63,465 bases of DNA, filler included, from Reticulomyxa filosa (GCA_000512085.1; 26 parts of 26 records of this genome joined end to end with filler, not necessarily neighbours in it), one strand, 5' to 3'. Numbered from the whole stretch's first letter, positions 7,849-8,155 are shown. The notes: generated by a model from the sequence alone, not told the origin. Program-made: numbers and translations.

Positions 7849-8155
7849 TAACAGCGGTGGGAGTCGGACCCACGTCTCCGCTTTAAATAAGGAGTGCTGC
7901 ACAAAAATCACACATGAAAGATATTTCTATCTCCCATGTGCAATTAATGTGTGCCCACATTGAGGGCAAGTGCATAACAAGTCCCTGCGACTTAAACTTG
8001 TACACACTTGACGCACCCCCACAATATGTGCCAACCTATCAGCCCTTTTGAAGCTGAGCCACTCCCCCGAGACAACGGGAAATCCCGAAGCCCTGAGAGT
8101 GGATGGTCCTAGCACTCATTATTTTTTGCGGGCTCTACCGTTGAGCTACGCCGCC
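7849..8155 (-). ncRNA. tRNA-like RNA gene with a 246-nt structured insert replacing the anticodon loop (element 1)
   Basis: Minus strand: acceptor GGCGGCG/CGCTGTT+A, D-arm GCTC-AACGGTA-GAGC, stem CCGC/GCGG, T-arm GTGGG-TCCGACT-CCCAC, T10 run ~10 nt downstream; insert 7882-8127 folds into several long helices. Confidence 0.8.

Follow-up and report, generated by a model that had tools for sequence, protein, structure and literature searches.

A near-complete tRNA body carrying a 246-nt branched RNA domain in place of the anticodon arm

Folds resembling tRNA have known roles as processing signals and as mimics. They occur in non-decoding RNAs such as the gammaherpesvirus 68 tRNA-miRNA transcripts, mascRNA, YrlA and the tRNA-like RNA of trypanosomatids, a separate component of their SRP, where they serve as Pol III promoters, as RNase P/Z processing signals, or as both. 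To our knowledge, none of these RNAs has its anticodon arm replaced by a large domain, and we are not aware of any natural nuclear gene whose full cloverleaf bears a large structured domain at this site. The longest tricRNA-type introns familiar to us, from Drosophila, are ~113 nt, and the insert described here is twice that length. In the laboratory, engineered tRNA scaffolds with inserts replacing the anticodon arm are stable and are processed in vivo (PMC3753655, PMC3401473). In eukaryotic pre-tRNAs, a proximal base pair directly follows the anticodon stem and an invariant 3-nt bulge lies at the 3' cut, while the 5' cut of the BHB-like motif lies 6 nt from the proximal pair (PMC6614914).

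The window, the whole stretch of Reticulomyxa filosa DNA that was analysed, comprises 63,465 nt, filler included, and a piece at 6568-8340 was read on both strands. The minus strand of this piece contains a 307-base element, running from 8155 down to 7849, that constitutes a near-complete tRNA with its anticodon arm replaced by a 246-base branched RNA domain (Table 1). The fold is stable and strand-specific, and there is no anticodon arm. The observation is real and lies well beyond chance, and each of the tRNA parts listed in a first-pass annotation of this DNA was recovered at its minus-strand position.

Table 1 Features of the element and of its 3' flank, listed from the 5' end of the tRNA body, followed by the insert and the candidate terminator.
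Feature	Position	Strand	Evidence
Acceptor stem, 5' strand GGCGGCG	8149..8155	-	pairs with 7850-7856, mean pair probability 0.94
U8 A9 and D arm GCUC-AACGGUA-GAGC (A-box-like TAGCTCAACGG)	8132..8148	-	4-bp stem, probability 1.00
CCGC, 5' strand of the 4-bp anticodon-stem remnant	8128..8131	-	pairs with 7878-7881 (GCGG), probability 1.00
GCGG (3' strand of the 4-bp stem) and 4-nt variable loop AGAC	7874..7881	-	sequence reading and fold
T arm GUGGG-UCCGACU-CCCAC (B-box-like GGGTCCGACTCC, C at position 55)	7857..7873	-	probability 1.00
Acceptor stem, 3' strand CGCUGUU, and discriminator A	7849..7856	-	sequence reading and fold
Insert: AAA/AAA internal loop, 14-bp closing helix, four-way junction, three arms	7882..8127	-	MFE and centroid agree on topology
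Closing helix, 5' strand AAAUAAUGAGUGCU	8111..8124	-	pairs with 7885-7898, probability 0.85-0.88
Closing helix, 3' strand AGCACUCCUUAUUU	7885..7898	-	fold and copy search
Arm A: short stem and two hairpins	8033..8108	-	helix probabilities 0.76-1.0
Arm B: long hairpin, 17-bp distal helix, 9-nt loop	7953..8031	-	distal helices 0.87-0.91
Arm C: CACA/UGUG stem, UU/UU loop, 18-bp GAAA-capped hairpin	7900..7951	-	probability 0.95-0.99
T10 run, candidate Pol III terminator	7829-7838	-	sequence reading; terminator role putative

Inspection of the tRNA body revealed the acceptor stem, D arm and T arm of a canonical tRNA together with its conserved tertiary residues. The acceptor stem GGCGGCG/CGCUGUU forms 7 bp, three of which are G·U. 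Residues that make tertiary contacts are kept throughout the D-arm region (U8, A14, R15, G18 G19, A21) and beyond it (Y48, G53-C61, U54, C56, R57, A58). Position 55, with C for U, is the sole deviation among the conserved residues checked. The same T arm is found in ordinary bacterial and phage tRNAs matched in metagenomes, and C55 is thus compatible with a working T loop. CCA is not encoded at the 3' end of the element. The D arm (GCUC-AAYGGUA-GAGC) and the variable loop AGAC are identical to those of a bacterial-type tRNA-Gly(UCC) (L030:671-741 and other genome_contigs loci), a likeness that hints at the parent tRNA species from which the scaffold may derive.

The two strands of the CCGC/GCGG stem are separated by exactly 246 nt. 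The closing helix of the insert, AAAUAAUGAGUGCU/AGCACUCCUUAUUU, comprises 14 bp with a single U·C mismatch, and leads into a tight four-way junction with linkers of 1-2 nt. Arm A carries a hairpin CCACUCUC/GGGAGUGG with a CGGG-AUUU-CCCG tip and a second hairpin UCAGCUU-CAAAA-GGGCUGA, and the helix strands of arm B are CAAGUGUGUACAAGU.../...ACUUGUUAUGCACUUG, with an uncertain GGG/CCC segment (pair probability 0.28). These helices agree with those previously annotated, except that the GAAA-capped hairpin of arm C, described as 14 bp, is longer, since the MFE structure assigns it 18 bp, made up of 13 perfect core pairs and an extension. Arms B and C open with similar 13-nt words (8023-8035, GUUGGCACAUAUU; 7946-7958, GUGGGCACACAUU), which hints that the arms may have arisen by duplication of one module; a search for internal duplication found nothing beyond this 13-nt similarity at the arm starts.

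Unconstrained folding of the 307 nt gave a cloverleaf with the insert as one closed domain and an MFE of -133.3 kcal/mol. Dinucleotide shuffles, the comparison proposed in the first-pass annotation, gave -96.4 +/- 5.3 kcal/mol, so that the element folds clearly better (z -6.93), and none of 100 shuffles was as good. The fold was unchanged when 60-nt flanks were added on both sides. In the ensemble, the four tRNA helices had pair probabilities of 0.94-1.0 and the closing helix of 0.85-0.88, and most helices of the insert were at 0.76-0.99. The piece was also scanned with a tRNA-body pattern defined by a 7-bp acceptor closure in which G·U was permitted, U8, a D stem of 4 bp whose loop reads A..GG..A, a T stem of 5 bp with G53-C61, U[UC]CRA in the T loop and any insert of 15-420 nt. 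This pattern, composed from general tRNA rules but after the sequence had been seen, had a single match in the piece, namely the element, and none in 3000 composition-matched shuffles.

In base composition the element stands out as a GC island, with 43-56% GC against 21-36% in the flanks. Within it, 56% of paired and 35% of unpaired positions are G or C, the latter value lying near the 35.6% G+C of the piece as a whole. A second GC-rich patch at 7380-7620 (45-51% GC) served as an internal control for the element's structure and showed no excess of structure on either strand (z +1.2 and -0.9). ORFs overlapping this patch had no Pfam match, and it may be an exon fragment or decayed sequence. Microsatellites lie upstream of the element, (AC)n at 8192-8204, and further downstream, (GTT)n at 7335-7352. 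With these microsatellites, long homopolymers and no long ORF, the surroundings look like AT-rich, repeat-rich eukaryotic nuclear DNA.

The first-pass annotation had argued from the many G-U pairs that selection acts on an RNA, and this argument was upheld. Of the 18 G·U pairs in the minus-strand helices, 15 belong to the insert and 3 to the acceptor stem. Symmetric internal loops hold ten mismatches, which are of the types U·U, A·A, C·U and A·G, with no A·C among them. In a DNA palindrome subject to strand-symmetric transitions, G·U and A·C are expected equally often. The 18:0 split corresponds to a two-sided binomial p of ~8e-6, to be read with the caveat that MFE folding favours G·U by itself. 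The plus strand folds to -101.6 kcal/mol, 32 kcal/mol poorer than the minus strand, with 4 G·U pairs in its own MFE structure. An energy computed for the plus strand on the mirrored structure was set aside, as scoring of A·C pairs by ViennaRNA makes it unreliable. Together, the asymmetry between G·U and A·C and the weaker fold of the plus strand support selection on an RNA read from the minus strand, whether this RNA would serve the cell or itself.

As annotated, the signals of a type-2 Pol III gene are present, in the form of sequence matches: an A-box-like TAGCTCAACGG in the D arm, a B-box-like GGGTCCGACTCC with one deviation, and a T10 run that starts 10 nt downstream of the discriminator A. 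The spacing between the two boxes is ~266 bp, well above the usual 30-60 bp. Yeast TFIIIC tolerates far longer spacings between A and B boxes in vitro. Within arm C, an internal T5 run at 7903-7907 on the minus strand, absent from the first-pass annotation, reads GAUUUUUGU in the RNA; it directly follows the 18-bp hairpin and might act as a weak or early Pol III terminator. T5 is a weak Pol III terminator in several species. Because of this tolerance of TFIIIC and the weakness of T5, the spacing and the internal run weaken the Pol III reading without ruling it out. C55 weakens it as well. The T5 run also resembles an Sm site, AU5G (AUUUUUG). Just downstream of the element, in the minus reading of 7808-7838, T10 is followed by AC and then A19, which make up an A/T inverted repeat whose predicted hairpin sits 3' of the putative terminator.

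With a probability of roughly one half, we read this single locus as a tRNA-derived, Pol III-type gene for a non-decoding, chimeric structured RNA of ~307 nt. Such an RNA would keep the L-shaped tRNA body, with the acceptor/T-arm stack, the D arm and almost all tertiary-contact residues. In place of the anticodon arm it would have a rod of ~21 bp, consisting of the 4-bp stem, the A-rich loop and the 14-bp helix, and this rod would bear a 200-nt domain built around the four-way junction. TFIIIC would be recruited by the A- and B-box sequences in the D and T arms, and transcription would end at the T10 run. RNase P and RNase Z would then cut at the acceptor stem, followed by addition of CCA. Since RNase P, RNase Z and the CCA-adding enzyme rely chiefly on the acceptor/T-arm stack for recognition, trimming and CCA tailing of the element would be expected.

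In this gene for a chimeric RNA, the 246-nt domain would be the cargo; the tRNA body would stabilise it and might promote its export. Judging by its rigid helices, its UU/UU loops and its GNRA cap, the domain is probably a platform for protein binding. Another option is that its long, near-perfect hairpins supply a small-RNA pathway. More tentatively, and on balance doubtfully, the locus may represent a natural tRNA scaffold, that is, a new class of eukaryotic Pol III ncRNA whose 246-nt domain has a cellular function of its own. For this case we propose that the tRNA body would act as promoter, as signal for RNase P, RNase Z and CCA processing, and as a handle for stability or export, and the RNA might be CCA-tailed or even aminoacylated.

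The strongest of the rival explanations takes the element as one copy of a tRNA-derived repeat, a SINE-like or selfish Pol III unit whose structure serves its own propagation or is merely young. The first-pass annotation labelled the locus "element 1", which implies further copies in the same genome, and a tRNA-derived repeat family is therefore a serious rival, although we consider it unlikely. The microsatellites and long A/T runs of the piece, a short contig, would suit a repeat. The hairpins are very regular, and near-perfect long hairpins with a TIR-like closing helix could be the mark of a young repeat. Nor was a homologue found outside this genome among the collections searched. A two-anchor pattern gave 0 matches in viral contigs, and blastn against phage records gave none. 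A 20-mer spanning the T arm and 3' acceptor strand had 28 matches in metagenomes, all in ordinary bacterial or phage tRNAs, and a pattern from D arm to T loop had 8 matches in prokaryote genomes, all of them neighbouring tRNA-Gly/tRNA-Thr (or Asn/Cys) genes. Spurious ORFs in or beside the element were used as probes for other copies in protein databases, and these look-ups returned no homologue and no exact sequence. Flanking ORFs had no Pfam match. In the literature searched, no description of such an element was found.

Several features of the locus argue against a repeat. tRNA-SINE heads do not keep the acceptor stem, whereas here the B box and the 3' acceptor strand lie at the extreme 3' end and the acceptor stem is still closed. 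The best direct repeat in the flanks, 12 nt with 1 mismatch, was equalled by 279 of 1000 shuffles and is not a significant target-site duplication. The putative transcribed unit has neither CCA nor an A-tail, the A19 run being located beyond the T10 run and hence outside the unit. Given the insignificant flank repeat, the position of A19 and the lack of an encoded CCA, no mark of retroposition was seen. Finally, the 18:0 split between G·U and A·C calls for selection on an RNA, although a SINE master copy could match this.

A second rival, which we regard as improbable, is that a MITE-like DNA transposon has inserted into a degenerate tRNA gene or pseudogene at its anticodon region, the closing helix representing its TIRs and AAA/AAA a 3-bp TSD. 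Consistent with this, the 14-bp arms AAATAA[T/G]GAGTGCT are inverted, with one mismatch and no G·U, and AAA stands on both sides. The arms would serve equally well as an RNA helix or as TIRs, and the flanking AAA is weak, uninformative evidence in AT-rich DNA. What remains once the insert and one AAA are taken out, CGC-AAA-GCG, does not make an anticodon arm, and the interior helices, with 15 G·U and 0 A·C, are unlike a DNA palindrome. Moreover, the copy search found no further copy of the closing-helix arms elsewhere in the piece.

The first-pass annotation had offered two interpretations, of which a tRNA scaffold carrying a folded RNA is favoured by the structure, the strand asymmetry, the GC island and the missing anticodon loop, whereas a tRNA gene with a giant intron is disfavoured. 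The latter, which we judge very improbable, would be a real tRNA gene from which splicing yields a tRNA and a linear or circular (tricRNA-like) RNA of 200-250 nt. The intact tRNA body is in its favour, and stable circular tRNA introns have precedent (PMC4536317). A decoding tRNA was rejected, as no choice of splice sites rebuilds a 5-bp anticodon stem with a 7-nt loop. An intron cut at 37/38 gives the anticodon arm CGCAA-AAAAUAA-AAGCG, which has only 3 bp (CGC/GCG), A·A mismatches at 30·40 and 31·39, an 11-nt loop, and A33 instead of U33; shifting the register by dropping position 26 gives 4 pairs and a loop that is no better. A BHB-like motif of the type described for eukaryotic pre-tRNAs (PMC6614914) was not found, as a symmetric 3x3 AAA/AAA loop, with three unpaired A on both strands, adjoins the 4-bp stem where a proximal pair and a 3-nt bulge at the 3' side would be expected. 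A loose BHB scan returned 49 matches at chance level, of which 0 were compatible with the stable fold.

Run at its default threshold, ARAGORN made no call, with or without introns and in its tmRNA and mitochondrial tRNA modes. Rfam was likewise silent, which bears out the prediction that standard scanners would miss the locus. The proposed check with introns allowed yielded a call only at 90-95% of the threshold, a tRNA-Ile(GAU) with a 214-nt intron at 31/32. This call, which on its face favours the intron reading, was rejected as an artefact: it requires the contrived 31/32 intron and an unfolded long variable arm, and 15 of 150 shuffles (10%) were also called.

Searches of Rfam, with E<=1 for the piece and E<=10 for the element, returned matches no better than chance (RUF4, mir-2566, tmRNA T arm) and none to tRNA. 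A match of the insert to a known Rfam family, one of the outcomes that the first-pass annotation named as a refutation, was looked for and none was found. The only contact of Rfam with the tRNA body was an 18-nt alignment of the T arm to tmRNA, with 9 and 5.5 bits compared with a gathering score of 47. Position 3-70 is C-G and not the G3·U70 of tmRNA. A regex search for the SRP helix-8 motif GNAR...AGCA found none, the only AGCA being located in the closing helix. A search for RNase P/MRP RNA limited to a CR-I-type motif gave no match, and no box C of a box C/D snoRNA occurs in the element. It is therefore hardly credible that the element is a very divergent known Pol III RNA (SRP/7SL, RNase P/MRP or tmRNA-like) with acquired tRNA-like ends: the length of ~300 nt suits 7SL and RNase P/MRP RNAs, the layout of tRNA-like domain, long helix and body recalls tmRNA, and the trypanosomatid SRP tRNA-like RNA offers a parallel, but the element has no Rfam match, no ARAGORN tmRNA call, no G3·U70, neither the helix-8 nor the CR-I-type motif, and, in the predicted fold, no room for a P4 pseudoknot between its 1-2 nt linkers.

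An expressed and conserved element would found a new family of Pol III RNAs and would reveal how much stretching TFIIIC promoter spacing and the tRNA-processing enzymes allow. It would also lay open a blind spot in annotation, in that tRNA and ncRNA pipelines all overlook it. Even as a member of a repeat family, the element would be an uncommon kind of tRNA-derived unit, one in which the entire tRNA fold is retained.

Comparison with known systems places the architecture as a variant of the known tRNA-like ncRNAs, with tmRNA and man-made tRNA scaffolds as its nearest counterparts. Like tRNA-derived SINEs, the element has a tRNA origin and internal A and B boxes, and possibly many copies. The boxes of SINE heads, however, are 30-40 bp apart and their acceptor closure is lost, whereas the element has boxes ~266 bp apart and a stem closed across 300 nt, and neither a TSD nor a 3' tail was seen. 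In the tRNA-like ncRNAs introduced above, the additional RNA is placed on the 3' or 5' side of the tRNA-like part, or the whole RNA is of tRNA size, and in YrlA the two ends are located in the other stem.

tmRNA resembles the element in that its two ends together make a tRNA-like domain, a long helix takes the place of the anticodon arm and leads to a large structured body, and the overall length is ~300-360 nt. The element differs from it in its complete D arm and in the absence of G3·U70, of a tag reading frame and, in the MFE fold, of pseudoknots. The contexts differ as well, since that of the element looks nuclear and eukaryotic, and we know of no SmpB system in such a setting. tricRNA introns (PMC4536317, PMC6614914) are, like the insert, structured RNAs embedded at the anticodon region of a tRNA-type Pol III gene, but the element has neither the BHB-like motif nor an anticodon arm that could be restored. 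The engineered tRNA scaffolds have the same architecture, with acceptor, D and T arms kept and a structured RNA grafted on the anticodon stem, and in them the tRNA body confers processing and nuclease resistance (PMC3753655, PMC3401473). They are man-made and expressed in E. coli, whereas the element is a natural locus with a far larger, branched insert. Should the natural-scaffold reading prove true, the element would be the eukaryotic architectural counterpart of tmRNA and a natural precedent for the engineered tRNA-scaffold method. An expressed and conserved element would mean that nature had reached the tRNA scaffold design of RNA biotechnology.
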